From assembly GCF_000315625.1 (NCBI RefSeq), contig NW_005434610.1, forward strand, positions 389,751 through 453,750: 64,000 bases of DNA, read 5' to 3'. This document shows, piece by piece, positions 31,120 to 36,152 of this stretch (the first letter of the stretch is position 1; the number at the start of each line of letters is the position of its first letter). Source of the DNA: Guillardia theta CCMP2712. Taxonomy: Eukaryota > Protista > Cryptophyta. The notes beneath the pieces were generated by a model. The model worked only from the letters and a program-made list of their open reading frames with translations. It was not told the DNA's origin and searched no databases. A program made the translations under genes and the position numbers.

Positions 31120-31613
31120 ACCGTCAGAGTTGGTTCAGTTTAGCCTTGTACGGCGATTCCCGTGGAATTCCTACTCGTTCCTTCCCATGGCTCGTTTGCA
31201 GCCTGATCCTCGCCAGTTGTACCCTGATAGTTTAATCCACACGCGGTGGCTTCCGTGTTTGTGAAAACGCTCTTTCATCCTTGCTGCCTCGTTTGCTGCC
31301 TCGTTGGCTGCCCGTTGGCCTCCTAGTCCGACCAGGTCGGGTGATCTCAATGGAACGGCTGGATGACTAGTGCGCTGAGTAGCTGTGGAGCACTGATCAA
31401 GGAACGAATGGCACGAGTCAAGGTGTGTTCGAACAAGGAAGAGACTTTGAAGGGGAGCAGATGCTTGAGCAAAGATGGAGGGAAGGAAAAAGGTTGAGAT
31501 ATCATCGGCATCGTTATGAAGAAAGAAACTGTTTACTATTGTTGTTCTCCAACGTGAACAGAGAAAGCTTTCGCCCAGAATAAGATGCAAGCACAACAGA
31601 GAAGAACCTGACA

Positions 31614-34600
31614 TCATTCTCCTCTTGTGTTTCGATAGTCGACGTACCGCCTGTGCCCCTGACTGTGCATGGCCCAGGCCTTGTAGTCCTTGAGCGACAA
31701 CTGCAGCTCGCACACGTGCAAGTTCACACCCAGTCGACGAGTCTCTTCGTTGTCAAGACGGACGTTGAGACATAGGTCACGGTACGCTCCTGACTGCTGC
31801 GACGTGAACTGGGGATCGAAACGATTTTTGACGCGCAGGATCACAAGCTCTTCGTCCTCGCAGATCCCTTGGAAGCATCTCGAGATGTCCTCGATGCTCT
31901 CGAACACGATGCATTGCCGCACCACGTCCAGCAGCCGCCAAACTTCCCCCCTGTACGACCTGCACAGCTTCTCGATCGCCCGATCGAAGCCCTTGAGCCT
32001 CGCCCAGCCGGGTCGATGCTGCGTGTCCTCTCCCTCGTACCTCACCCACCTGACCTCCCTTGGCCCCTCCTCCTCCTTCTCCTCCTCCTCCTCCTTCTCC
32101 TTCTCCTCCTCCTCCTGCACTAGCCCCCCCCACTTCTTGAGCAGCTCCTTCACCTTGCGCAGGTAGGGCAGCTCAAGCAGCATGGCCTGATTGTAGAGCT
32201 GATCCAGACATGCGATCTTGCTCGTGTCATGTCGCACGACCCAGTCGAACCCTGAGGGGCTCTGCCCCTGGTCCCTCCCTTGGAACTGATAGATGACTCC
32301 CTTGCGCCAGGCCTCGGGCCCGGCATCTACCATCGCCTTGAGCCTCATGACTTGCTCCATGGTCTCTCGATTGGTCGTCAGCGCTTGCCAGACCTCGTCG
32401 TAATGCTTCACGTCGTCCTCGATCCCCCGCCGTGCTCGATGGATCGCCATCCTCCGCAGCAGCAGCACACCCAGCCAGCAAAGAATCAGGATGGATCCGC
32501 TGATGGGAACCTGAAAGCCTCTTCTGCCAAACACATAGGAATAGTGGAAGTTGATGGCAAAGTAGTTCATCAGTGCATTGACAGGAAGAAACGAAAAGAA
32601 CTTCTCCTCCCAGAATACCAGGAGCAGTCCGGTGACCAACGCTGCAAAACCCTGAAAGAACCAGAACAGGATGTCGATCGCCAAGCCATTGATCGCACTG
32701 CAGATTCCAGTAGCGATCTCGAAAAAGGCAGGCACAGAAAAACACATGGAAAAGATCACAACGCCCGTACGGGGCCACCCGAGGAAGCTCGCCAAGGCAC
32801 CACCGAGGCAGGCAAACATCACCGGGAAGAGGTAGAAGATGGTGCCAACAGCTTGATAGAGGGGCGGGACCAGCGAAATCACGTTCTCAGCTCCTCGCTT
32901 TAGGGTCGTTGGGTACGGCTCCTCCCATAAGGGAATGCAGGCGGTGCTGTAAAGGTCCCACTTGCATCGGGTGCCTGCTTTCAGAATCCAGCTGGAGTCT
33001 TGGAGCTCCCACGGGCTCTCTGTTGAGGTCGAGGTGACCTCCAGCTGGAAGCGGACGGGGTCACCTCCCTGGGTGCCGGGACGACTGTCGGTAATGAAGT
33101 AGAAGGCGTTTGCGGCTTCGAGAGTCTTGAAGGAGAAGTAGAAGTCGTTTCCCACCTCCACTCCCTCCACCGGCGAAGAGACCTTACATCCGTCCAAGAT
33201 CCACCCGAGCTGTAGCGAGTAGTTCCCCCCGGCTGGTAGCGCAGCCTCCCGCCATTGCACAACCTTCATCCTGGCTGCATGTACATGGAACACCTGTCGA
33301 CCAGTGAATTCATACCAGATCCCTCCGGGCCCGAACGTGTAGATTAGATAAAAGGTGCCGCCAGCCAGCAGCAGCACCTTGAACCAGGTCTTCTGGATCG
33401 CCAACGTGCACGGGATAGATGTGAAGAGCACGCTGGCTGTCCCGGCCTTCTTGACTGCGAGTCGCAGCTCCTGGAGCCTCGCCCCGAGAGTATCGCCAGC
33501 AAACAGACATCTTTGTCTCAGCAAGTCCTTCTGCCTTCGTGTCTCAGTCATGGAGTGAGCGGCAGACCGGTAGAGTGAATTCAAAGACCCGACCTCCTTG
33601 CCCATATCGCTAATCTTGTCCACCACGACCCTTGAAAGTTTACGAATCCTATCAGGACTCAGCATGCAAAACCAGGCAAGCGGGTCAAGCTTCGACATGA
33701 ACAAGGAGCATCTCGCACGCAAGTCGATCTGGTGGATGCGCCGGTAAGTCTTCAAGTCTTCCAACATGCTCGGGGTTGCCGCAGCTTGCAGACGGGCCAG
33801 GACCAGTCGAAGTTCACAGACGAACGCGCACGTGCCGTAGAATCGCGATTGCTCTGTGACCAACCTTACCTTTAGACAAACATCCCTGACCTGTCCCAAG
33901 TGTCTGCTGTCATCCCCCACAGCGAGTCTGTTCGTGAGGCTCACAATCACAACCTCGCGATCCCTTGACAACACTTGCAAACAGTCTGTGATGTCTTGTA
34001 TCCGCTCGAAGACGATGCTCTGCCGCACCAGATCCGTGTGTCTTGCAACAGCTCCATGGTACTTTCGTAGGATCTTTTCATAGCTTGCCTCGAAGCTCTT
34101 CATGGGAGTCTCATGGAAACGAGCGGTAGACCCATGCGAGTTCTGTAGTTCTTCCACGATGACCACCAACTTATCAACAAACACTTTCTGCATCGTCACT
34201 CCCTGGGCGTACAGTTGGTCAAAACTAGTGATGTCGTTTGTTTCAGACAGCGTCACACTTGCAAACGAGGTGAAAGCTCCAAATGAAGCATGCGTAGAAG
34301 AAGAGCGAGTTCTTTTCAGCGCTGAAAATGATTCCAGGGTTCGAATCCTTTCCACGTCTGTCTTTACATCCCCTTCGCTTGTTTGAATGTACGCCAGGCG
34401 AAATTGCCGCAAGTTTGTTGGCTTCTTTGCGCTGTTACAAAAGGCTTCTGCCATTTCGACTAGCACTCTCAACTTTGAGTCGTCTTCTTGCGATAGAATG
34501 TCCTCCCAGACCTGATCCAGCTCGGCCTGGTGCTTCACTGCAGACTTGCGGGAGCAAGTCCTGAGGTACTCACGGATTGCCATCAGGACAAGGAAGAAGA

Positions 34601-35874
34601 GCAGGGCGACCAGTCTGACGTATGCTCCGCTTGATCTCAGCGCAACCTGCATCCCAAACAGAATCGCCGATGACACCGCCCCAAGCTCCAACACCAGGCA
34701 CTCGTGAATCATCAGAGGGCAAGGGAAGAGCAGCAGGATCTGGAGCAAACAGACTCAGAAGAAGGAGAGGAAGAGACGAGAAGAACCGTGAGGCTCTCGA
34801 TCAGCGCCGCATACCCCACATCTAGGTTGCAGCTGCCCACCGTGACGATGAAGTTGGAGATGCCAACAATAGCTGCGAGGAAATATCCCAAGAACAGCAT
34901 CTGCCATCATCCCGTCACTCGAATGTGAGTAGGAAGTTTACAAGCACACTTGCCTGTACCGATGCGTCAAACTTGCCCCAATATGCGCATGCTCCAAGGA
35001 ACAAGAGCCCGGACGCTTTCAAGAATCGCTCCACGACTCTTGCGTAGGCAGGCCATCGGCATGTGAGGTCATTCCATTCGAACTTGACGATTTGGTTGCG
35101 TTGAAACGGAGCCAACATCCTCGAGAAGTCACTCTCAGCCACGTCTTGACCTACAGGGACGGGAACCACTCGATCCAACGACAGCATGGACGGCATCACG
35201 TAGACTTTCCAGTGCTCGCCATCACCGGAGGACTCGAGCGTGAACTCGACGGGGTCAAACTCACTACTTGCGTTGGACGTCAGGATGTACCAGCCGTCGA
35301 AAGAGAGCGGAGCATCTGACTTGAGAGTCACGGAAGCTCCTCGCCTCTCGTCGACATACAAGTAACCCCCAGCATTGGCGTCTCCCTGCGGATACCTCGG
35401 AATCAAACAATCCCCTTGCAGCACTCCGAAGGACTGTAACCCAGGAGATAATATGGCAGATCCTTTCAGTCCATTCCGAAGCCTTCTTGCTGTGAAGCGA
35501 AAGAGGCGAGAGCCTCCTTGTGACTGATCTAAGCTCGCAAGCGACCATACCGCTGACTCAAAGGGTGGCGCAAAGAGAAGAAGCACAGCAATGACAACCA
35601 GAAGCGCTTGGAAGATCCTCACGGACAGAAACCAGGTGAGGGGATGAGAGGAGCAGAGAACTTCGAAGCTCTTGTGCGAGAAGATCTTTGACCGAGCTTC
35701 TTCAAGACTGTCCTGTAGTCTATGACCCTGCATCTGACTGCTTTCCACCAGATAGTCGAGCCATGCATGAGGAATTTGTTCTGCCGGATCTGGCTGAGAG
35801 CAGCTGATGTTGCTCTGAGGTAATATCTCCTGACCTTCATCCTCTGCTGCAAGAATCTCCGTCTCAGCCGCCAT
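31614..35874 (-). CDS. Tandem-module 12-TM protein: 2x[TM + discoidin/F5-8-like ectodomain + 5TM + RelA/SpoT-type synthetase-like domain], ~1386 aa
   Basis: Exons 35874-34954, 34900-34787 and 34739-31614, joined in frame by a GC-AG intron (34901-34953) and a GT-AG intron (34740-34786). The C-terminal domain has RLKGFDRAIEK, LLDVVR, VKNRF, SGAYRD, CELQL and GHRRY. Ectodomains contain DGWYILTSNASSEFDPVEFTLESSGDGEHW and NAFYFITDSRPGTQGGDPVRFQLEV. Confidence 0.85.
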
Positions 35875-36152
35875 GCGCTCCCTTCATCGCAGTGCGCTCC
35901 GAGAAGGAGGGTATGTACTACAAAATACGTAATGTGAAGATGCTCCTATTTGTCCCTTCTAGTTAACTAATAAATAAGACGACCAGCATATTCAGTTTTA
36001 CTCAACATTAAGTAATTATTTGGAGCGGGCCCAGTGGCCCGCCGACCGGGACCCGGTGTGAGTCATATTTATTGCGTAACGGTTGGTAACGGGTAGTCAA
36101 TGAATGTGAGGAGACAGTGAGGGGAGGTCGAGGAAAGAGGAGGACAGGAGAG

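Follow-up and report, generated by a model that had tools for sequence, protein, structure and literature searches.

Alarmone synthetases are held to be enzymes of bacteria and plastids, and they include toxin-type synthetases, among which are the Tas1-like makers of (p)ppApp and the toxSAS enzymes that pyrophosphorylate tRNA. The gene analysed in this work is located on the minus strand of a stretch of 64,000 nucleotides (nt) of the genome of the cryptophyte Guillardia theta CCMP2712 (contig NW_005434610.1, positions 389,751 to 453,750; the whole stretch is referred to as the window), between positions 31614 and 35874 of the window. It encodes a protein of 1386 amino acids (aa), in which two globular domains having the fold of the RelA/SpoT homologue (RSH) synthetases are each preceded by a predicted membrane module.

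The described systems to which this protein can be compared are organized in a different way. Tas1 (PDB 6ox6), the (p)ppApp synthetase toxin of the Pseudomonas aeruginosa type VI secretion system (T6SS), is a soluble effector of bacterial origin, delivered through PAAR/T6SS and curbed by an immunity protein, whereas the algal domain is the predicted cytosolic tail of a protein with 12 transmembrane (TM) helices, in tandem with a degenerate copy. The small alarmone synthetases (SAS) RelQ/SAS1 and RelP/SAS2 (5ded, 6fgk, 6ex0) are soluble homotetramers of proteins of about 200 aa. The plastid RSH enzymes (RSH1-4, CRSH), even though they share with the Guillardia protein a synthetase domain of the same superfamily, are soluble, plastid-targeted and provided with an HD hydrolase and TGS/ACT or EF-hand domains, whereas the 12-TM Guillardia protein has neither those domains nor a targeting peptide. 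In photosynthetic eukaryotes, no RSH enzymes other than the plastid ones have been described (PMC10107265, PMC6881373), and a review of (p)ppGpp in plants and algae treats the eukaryotic RSH enzymes as plastid proteins (PMC10107265). In the literature, no description was found of membrane-bound or cryptophyte RSH-like proteins, nor of this gene, whose UniProt entry bears the automatic name "RelA/SpoT domain-containing protein". An earlier note, made from the DNA sequence alone, had described a duplicated 12-TM protein with two RelA/SpoT-type synthetase domains, and had interpreted it as a cell-surface alarmone synthase built like an adenylyl cyclase; its observation is confirmed, and its interpretation is partly supported, as regards the fold and the layout.

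The Globular Domains Have a Divergent RelA/SpoT Synthetase Fold

The globular domain belongs, as a divergent member, to the RelA/SpoT synthetase (NT_Rel-Spo_like) superfamily, and it is not a long RSH. It occurs twice in the protein, as domain 1 (residues 528-680; 33735..34193, minus strand), matched by the family hidden Markov model at E 7.9e-32, and as domain 2 (residues 1226-1386; 31617..32099, minus strand). Neither of them is matched by PF04607 (RelA_SpoT, gathering cut-off 27 bits), even at E<=10, and the single-sequence search of the PDB with the domains was blank; the sub-threshold matches to KPBB_C, GLTP, DUF4908 and GutM, given by the single-sequence searches of Pfam, NCBIfam and PDB, were discarded as chance. 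Since Pfam misses the protein itself, the link to RelA/SpoT needs a family profile or a structure model. A search performed with the C-terminal 160 residues against 1.84 billion representatives retrieved 1495 clusters at E<=1e-3 (640 at E<=1e-10), and a family profile was constructed on the alignment of 44 diverse members. This profile has exactly two matches in the PDB, i.e., Tas1 (6ox6, E 8.4e-5), which is the best one, and Bacillus subtilis YwaC/RelP (6fgk, E 9.6e-4), the alignment with YwaC covering all five synthetase motifs. PF04607 is touched by 16 of these 44 sequences (best E 1.6e-5), and it is the only family that recurs; moreover, the alignment of the family profile with the PF04607-positive Shewanella protein P0274, obtained with hhalign, has a probability of 98.3% and an E of 1.5e-14.

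The structural comparison leads to the same superfamily. The AlphaFold model of domain 2 (pLDDT 81.9, pTM 0.73) was compared with the PDB using Foldseek, and all the top 50 matches are RSH synthetases (E ~2e-5, probability 1.00), including SAS1, SAS2/RelP, CapRel, FaRel2, RelSeq, Tas1 and SpoT. VIA-align ranks 28 RSH synthetases, with Z from 10.5 to 6.1, ahead of any other fold (Z<=6.0 for the first one). SAS1 (Z 10.5) and SAS2 (Z 10.0) are the best structural matches (Foldseek E 2e-5, TM-score 0.55-0.57), although they share only 15-24% identity with the algal domain, and Tas1 follows with Z 8.6 and a root-mean-square deviation of 2.1 Å over 112 residues, at 20% identity. The sequence stretch K-x3-R-x3-K ... 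Y-x-G-D ... D-x2-R is common to Tas1 and to the family, whereas, compared to the SAS motifs, the family has R for S in RxKxxxSxxxK, GYRD for GY(R/Q)SxH and ELQL for ExQxRT. A class III cyclase fold finds no counterpart here, given that the protein has no Guanylate_cyc Pfam match and the domain folds as an RSH synthetase. Of the claim that the protein carries two RelA/SpoT synthetase domains, the fold holds for both (profile, Foldseek and VIA), while PF04607 misses both and domain 1 is degenerate. The lack of a hydrolase domain and of an obvious targeting peptide, and the acidic N-terminus, were correctly noticed: no HD_4, TGS, ACT, EF-hand, targeting or other Pfam domain was found in the 1386-aa protein, nor a signal peptide.

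Domain 2 Keeps the Catalytic Residues, Domain 1 Does Not

The conserved residues are numbered here according to their position in the 160-aa query, to which 1226 has to be added in order to obtain the residue of the protein. On the basis of the alignment to RelP, K35, R39 and K43 correspond to the two lysines of RxKxxxSxxxK with R replacing S, D57 to the Mg-binding Asp of DxxGxR, G104, Y105 and R106 to GYR, E130 and Q132 to the Glu and Gln of ExQ, and H148 and Y151 to the H..Y motif. The analysis of the single-domain copies of the family revealed that K35, R39, K43, D57, R60, N91, R106 and E130 are invariant (139/139), and that G104, Y105, Q132, H148 and Y151 are conserved in 88-99% of the family (the first four in at least 93%). 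Domain 2 keeps K1261, R1265, K1269, D1283, R1286, Y1331, R1332, E1356, Q1358, H1374 and Y1377, its sole change in the conserved set being that of G104 to Ala1330 (SGAYRD). The motifs that had been assigned to this domain from the sequence alone, i.e., RLKGFDRAIEK (starting at residue 1259), LLDVVR (1281), SGAYRD (1328), CELQL (1355) and GHRRY (1373), agree with the profile alignment to RelP and Tas1.

In domain 1, the same positions read K-A-K-D-R-N-Q-V-R-D-E-R. This domain retains K35, K43, D57, R60 and E130, and it has lost R39 (R39A), G104 (G104Q), Y105 (Y105V), Q132 (Q132R), and both H148 and Y151, the H..Y helix being absent. With these residues lost, catalysis is likely in no more than one domain. 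A similar trend can be observed in the 30 tandem proteins of the family, whose second domains are nearly invariant, while the first domains retain the ATP/Mg side and often lose Y105 (13/30), Q132 (14/30) and H148 (18/30); in the paralogues P0005, P0007 and P0008, both domains are intact. The prediction of a complex between domain 1 and domain 2 had a score of 0.00, with the fold of the partner uncertain and alignments not used.

In order to evaluate the selection acting on the degenerate domain, the protein was compared region by region with its two closest paralogues, located on the genome contigs C50 and C103. Domain 1 and the C50 paralogue share 87.6% identity with a dN/dS of 0.18, values very close to those of domain 2 (87.5% and 0.16), whereas the TM bundles and linkers are far less conserved among the paralogues (43-68% identity). 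In addition, the gene and its C50 and C103 paralogues have the same substitutions in domain 1 and the same G104A in domain 2. No diversifying selection was detected, at this resolution, on the ectodomains of the three closest paralogues (dN/dS 0.14-0.36). The loss of the acceptor-side and C-terminal residues, the maintenance of the ATP/Mg side and the purifying selection point to domain 1 as a non-catalytic partner; the simplest reading of these sequence data is that it may have a conserved non-catalytic role, such as regulation, nucleotide sensing or scaffolding.

Duplicated Membrane Modules

In each half of the protein, the same elements are found in the same order, on the basis of hydropathy and of the AlphaFold model of half 2: a pair of cytosolic helices, a single TM, a beta-sandwich ~140-185 residues long, five membrane-length hydrophobic helices, a helical linker and a globular domain of about 150 aa. 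The six helices predicted per half correspond to the layout 6TM-domain-6TM-domain that the sequence had suggested. The half 2 model, covering residues 735-1125 and based on 25 homologous modules, has a pLDDT of 85.2. Half 2 (all features on the minus strand) begins with the inter-half cytosolic helices (residues 681-795; 33390..33734; helices 2-22 and 26-42 of the module model), containing RLQELRLAVK..VLFTSIP, followed by TM1 (residues 796-818; 33321..33389; hydropathy and model helix 62-80), by the second beta-sandwich ectodomain (residues 819-975; 32850..33320; model strands 95-233, with block pLDDT mostly 83-94 and two blocks at 61 and 70), by TM2-TM6 (residues 976-1112; 32439..32849; hydropathy and five model helices between 248 and 390) and by linker 2 (residues 1113-1225; 32100..32438), delimited by hydropathy and motif positions and harboring HYDEVWQAL, IACLDQLYNQA and a Glu/Lys run. 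Linker 1 (residues 403-527; 34194..34568), with ELDQVWEDI and ITSFDQLYAQG, aligns to linker 2 in the long self-alignment of the protein.

The Glu/Lys low-complexity run, EEEEKEKEEEEEKEEE, is located at 32058-32127, just ahead of domain 2. It is missing in the C103 paralogue and shorter in the C50 one; being flagged as a repeat, it was skipped in read mapping, and none of the listed transcript contigs lies over 32058-32189.

The idea that the two halves derive from the duplication of a whole module is supported. The two globular domains share 44% identity over 112 aa (E 4e-23), and a longer self-alignment, including TM5-6 and the linker, has an E of 8e-18. Each of the TM/ectodomain modules matches both the first and the second modules of the paralogues, and the fact that both match the same paralogue module supports a whole-module tandem duplication. 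All the motifs by which the duplication had been recognized are present in the 1386-aa protein: the pre-TM motifs RLQDSLEEAR and VLCSSHP start at residues 52 and 72, and RLQELRLAVK and VLFTSIP at 766 and 782, while the juxtamembrane motifs ELDQVWEDI and HYDEVWQAL start at 418 and 1124, and ITSFDQLYAQG and IACLDQLYNQA at 515 and 1187. The pre-TM pair on its own is not significant (E 0.16).

As for the topology, in both halves one finds Lys/Arg clusters ahead of TM1 and behind TM6, the acidic N-terminus lacks a signal peptide, and each sandwich has one N-x-S sequon (N201 and N851). These features fit an N-in topology, with the globular domains in the cytosol and the sandwiches on the opposite side, and we infer that both RSH-fold domains are cytosolic.

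The TM/ectodomain module is an orphan, since no Pfam family was found in 25 members and no profile match in the PDB, and the shape matches are weak. Nor was any transporter family matched in Pfam or in the PDB profile search. The sandwich resembles weakly the C2-type domains of PTEN, PI3K and RasGAP (Foldseek/VIA), and the Atlas clusters with Ig-like (Big_2) or discoidin (F5_F8_type_C) domains match the module at a TM-score of only ~0.3; concerning an assignment to F5_F8_type_C, a sandwich is predicted and its shape matches are only weak and mixed, the ectodomain having been folded as part of the module. The helical bundle is loosely similar to TMEM45A, rhodopsins, G-protein-coupled receptors and small channels, with Z of 6-8.7, and values up to 8.7 are below the level that is meaningful for shared ancestry of helical bundles.

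The resulting layout recalls that of the membrane adenylyl cyclases (6TM-C1-6TM-C2), where two 6-TM blocks are each followed by a cytosolic nucleotide-binding domain, one of which is degenerate. An equal likeness exists with the full ABC transporters, in which transmembrane domains (TMD) and nucleotide-binding domains (NBD) alternate (TMD-NBD-TMD-NBD), including the degenerate site of some of them. Both differ from the Guillardia protein, which has a beta-sandwich ectodomain between TM1 and TM2 of each block; furthermore, the active site of RSH enzymes lies within one domain and not at a dimer interface. Since the folds are unrelated, the likeness to adenylyl cyclases and ABC transporters is an analogy of layout only.

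Gene Structure and Transcripts

The coding region consists of two open reading frames (ORFs) on the minus strand, at 34915-35874 (319 codons) and 31614-34748 (1044 codons). Assembled transcript contigs of the runs X1, X2 and X4, from three studies, span positions 31529-35882 with two joints, and public transcript runs of six studies carry the stretch of the gene. The joint 34900|34954 (contigs of X1 and X2) corresponds to intron 1 (34901..34953, 53 nt), having GC..AG ends on the minus strand, that is, a GC donor instead of GT (G|GCAAGT ... CAG). The joint 34739|34787 (contigs of X1, X2 and X4) corresponds to intron 2 (34740..34786, 47 nt), with GT..AG ends on the same strand. Single contigs of X1 and X2 bridge both ORFs via both joints, so that 34915-35874 is not a separate gene; the absence of the introns from the contigs shows that these are derived from RNA and that both ORFs belong to a single gene. 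The spliced coding sequence (35874-34954 + 34900-34787 + 34739-31617) is in frame and encodes 307+38+1041 = 1386 aa, which is exactly the length, with two short introns, that had been expected from the genomic sequence. The evidence of expression consists of the assembled contigs, because few raw reads were obtained (in run X19, of which about 6% was read, only 4 partial reads were placed), and the RNA status of the contigs is shown by the removed introns.

Exon 1 (34954..35874, minus strand; residues 1-307) is delimited by the ORF and by transcript contigs ending at 35877-35882, and, according to hydropathy, it contains the acidic N-terminus, the pre-TM helices, TM1 (35569-35640), the first beta-sandwich (~35014-35568) and the start of the TM bundle. 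Exon 2 (34787..34900, minus strand; residues 308-345), bounded by both joints and in frame, encodes TM3 and the start of TM4 of half 1. Exon 3 (31614..34739, minus strand) encodes residues 346-1386 and includes the stop codon (31614-31616); it is defined by the ORF, by contigs reaching 31529 and by the deposited model (GUITHDRAFT_113149 / XP_005827870, 1337 aa), whose residues 297-1337 are 100% identical to the exon 3 product. The deposited protein starts at Met48 and uses a first donor located 6 nt earlier (..DAS|MLF versus ..DASVQ|MLF).

Two local variants of the transcripts were observed. At 34038-34089, the runs X2 and X4 contain, beside the reference form, a second contig of 112 nt that differs from it at five positions (G>A, A>G, G>A, A>G, C>T) and represents either an allelic or a strain variant or else a closely related paralogue. 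One low-depth contig of X4 joins 34450 to 34563, skipping 112 nt with CC..CT ends and one extra letter; such a joint would break the frame, and the contig probably arose as a chimera during assembly.

A Family of About 50 Genes

The genome assembly (87.1 Mb, 669 contigs) contains at least 84 matches to the domain. By position, they belong to ~29 two-domain genes, with domains ~2.1 kb apart, and to ~23 single-match loci, i.e., to about 50 genes. A PF04607 search of the whole genome matched none of the 84 family copies, and detected only two canonical HD_4 + RelA_SpoT loci (C47:131263-132737 and C24:131220-132315), presumably encoding the plastid RSH enzymes. The HD_4 search of the genome had two matches only, both embedded in these long RSH loci, and no stand-alone small alarmone hydrolase was found by it. 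That the family lies below the Pfam RelA_SpoT threshold may explain why no papers were found. Some members are arranged in tandem arrays, at C30:477353-530987 (four genes), C206:46648-57042 (two genes, head-to-head) and C1:833992-842949 (two genes), whose arrangement in the assembly points to probable recent local duplications.

All the named relatives are cryptophytes, i.e., Guillardia, Hemiselmis andersenii, H. tepida and Rhodomonas salina, and marine metagenomes and transcriptomes supply many further members. On two long environmental contigs the neighbouring genes are eukaryotic (TBCD, PIG-S, TRPC4AP-like), and the best named match of the environmental members is the cryptophyte Hanusia, with only 49% identity. 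A Tara Oceans contig (PRJEB4352; L025:81-3617), gene-dense and eukaryotic, harbors an intron-free member of 1178 aa, which groups with near-identical environmental sequences in a cluster of 41. A fragment from this cluster was deposited as a protein of a 'Promethearchaeia archaeon' metagenome-assembled genome, and is probably a mis-binned eukaryotic contig.

Bacterial Relatives of the Toxin Type

The scan for related loci with a single protein returned only Shewanella. The Shewanella relative of the P0274 type is a 264-aa protein with a signal peptide, and its score of 27.7 bits is just over the Pfam RelA_SpoT cut-off. It shares with the algal family the variant motifs KNRF, GYRD, E-x-Q-L and H-x2-Y, as well as K-x3-R-x3-K, but it has neither the TM/ectodomain module nor the tandem arrangement. 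In all nine Shewanella loci (L013-L021), a SUKH_5/SMI1-KNR4 gene is located ~130-165 nt downstream. The pair formed by an exported RelA_SpoT-like protein and a SUKH_5 immunity-type gene is thus conserved from S. olleyana (L013:4001-5359) to the other eight loci (L014-L021), and, judging from its gene content, it resembles a secreted toxin with its immunity protein, related to Tas1 and not yet described. The SUKH family, as Zhang, Iyer and Aravind are said to have described in 2011, supplies immunity proteins of polymorphic toxins. The nearest solved and bacterial kin of the algal domain thus appear to be of the toxin type, rather than housekeeping (p)ppGpp synthetases. Tas1 and the SUKH-paired Shewanella proteins suggest that the algal domain was acquired from a toxin-type branch of the superfamily, which leaves room for a role in defence or cell death. 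As for the hallmarks of toxin-type SAS, namely an adjacent immunity or antitoxin gene and a secretion or delivery module, Pfam revealed no such module in the algal gene.

Discussion

The best explanation of the whole body of data is that of an expressed nuclear gene encoding a two-module polytopic protein, in which an active C-terminal pyrophosphokinase is accompanied by a regulatory domain 1 and coupled to the ectodomains; we consider it moderately probable. According to this model, the first TM of each module would act as a signal-anchor, leaving the sandwich on the far side of the membrane, and the activity of the enzyme would be made responsive to an outside (or lumenal) cue by the ectodomains together with the TM bundles. 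Domain 2 would bind ATP-Mg via K1261/R1265/K1269/D1283/E1356 and pass the beta,gamma-pyrophosphate on to an acceptor nucleotide, stacked on Y1331, at its 3'-OH, while domain 1 would be a non-catalytic regulatory or scaffolding partner. That the C-terminal domain is an active pyrophosphokinase is what we infer from its residues. The Tas1-like K-x3-R-x3-K motif makes a product of the (p)ppApp/(p)ppGpp type, i.e., an adenosine- or guanosine-3'-pyrophosphate, more probable than anything else. The present analysis of the gene adds a transcript-verified three-exon model with a GC-AG intron, a conserved degenerate domain 1 and SUKH-linked bacterial relatives.

Some data weigh against this explanation. 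The Pfam RelA_SpoT model does not recognize either domain. An Ala occupies the near-invariant position G104 in domain 2 of the gene and of its two closest paralogues, and the family does not conserve the RT of ExQxRT, the initial R of RxK or the H of GYxSxH, so that the chemistry may differ from that of the classical RSH enzymes. The topology and the membrane identity are predictions only, and none of the family members is known to have an activity, a product or a ligand. Lastly, the HD_4 genome search revealed no dedicated cytosolic enzyme degrading a messenger, and the nearest bacterial relatives (Tas1 and the Shewanella proteins with a SUKH partner) are toxin-like.

This last point leads to the possibility that the protein is a receptor-triggered toxic effector of toxin-type descent, serving immunity or cell death, in which a pathogen or damage cue would cause ATP depletion or a translation block and then growth arrest or abortive infection, instead of the release of a graded messenger. 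The T6SS toxin Tas1, having the same K-x3-R-x3-K variant, is the best PDB sequence match; the closest Pfam-positive bacterial relative is exported and has a SUKH_5 gene next to it in 9/9 Shewanella loci; CapRel and FaRel2 also turn up as structural matches; an expansion as large and lineage-specific as this one (84 domains) is what immune receptor families typically show; and the lack of a cytosolic HD_4 hydrolase in the genome search is in agreement with such a role. However, the ectodomains of the three closest paralogues are under purifying selection (dN/dS 0.14-0.36), the gene is constitutively present in the transcript assemblies of several studies, and no immunity or antitoxin partner is evident, so that we regard a toxic effector as unlikely; its enzymology, moreover, would be the same as that of the best explanation, only the physiological outcome being different.

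A somewhat more improbable case is that neither domain is catalytic and that the binding of ATP, or of an alarmone-like nucleotide, regulates a channel, a transporter or an adhesion receptor. The TMD-NBD-TMD-NBD layout fits full ABC transporters as much as adenylyl cyclases, a non-catalytic use of the fold is already present in the protein, given that domain 1 is degenerate yet conserved, and domain 2 itself carries G104A; to this may be added the loose resemblance of the 6-helix bundle to TMEM45A, rhodopsins, G-protein-coupled receptors and small channels. Nevertheless, these helical matches are below the level of shared ancestry, no transporter family is matched, and D57, E130, Q132, Y105, R106, H148 and Y151 are nearly invariant in 139 single-domain and 30 second-domain copies; such a near-invariant set of Mg/ATP and acceptor residues is the pattern of an active enzyme rather than of a binding module. 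The plastid nature of the eukaryotic RSH enzymes hitherto described (PMC10107265) might instead suggest an ordinary stringent-response RSH of the plastid, fused by gene prediction to a neighbouring membrane protein. This was ruled out by the transcript contigs, single ones of which cross both introns, by the ~2.1-kb domain spacing repeated in ~29 paralogues and by the two canonical HD_4 + RelA_SpoT loci found elsewhere (C47 and C24), and is extremely improbable also because exon 3 is one frame of 1041 codons with both domains and the second TM module, and because the protein lacks a hydrolase, TGS or ACT domain and a signal or transit peptide.

Going back to the explanation of a membrane-coupled pyrophosphokinase, a broader and distinctly more tentative proposal is that of a new receptor-enzyme class, present in cryptophytes and in their uncultured marine eukaryotic relatives. 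In these proteins, the sandwich and a 6-TM bundle would gate a Tas1-like pyrophosphokinase, a 3'-pyrophosphorylated purine ((p)ppApp/(p)ppGpp) would be a cytosolic second messenger or a growth-arrest switch, and the pair of an intact and a degenerate domain would be convergent with the C1/C2 pair of the cyclases. The synthesis of (p)ppGpp-type molecules in eukaryotic cytosols is an open question, and animals have (p)ppGpp and the hydrolase MESH1 without a known synthetase (PMC10107265); about 50 membrane-anchored, non-plastid proteins with the RSH fold and with conserved catalytic residues would be a testable eukaryotic source of them. The specific contribution of this gene is a degenerate first domain maintained under purifying selection. 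From what its sequence and its relatives indicate, a bacterial stress- or toxin-type enzyme may serve as the output of a receptor in a eukaryote. If this were true, a new output domain would be added to the short list of receptor-enzymes (kinases, cyclases, phosphatases), and the toxin-like ancestry would mean that a bacterial weapon has been domesticated as a signalling or immune module.

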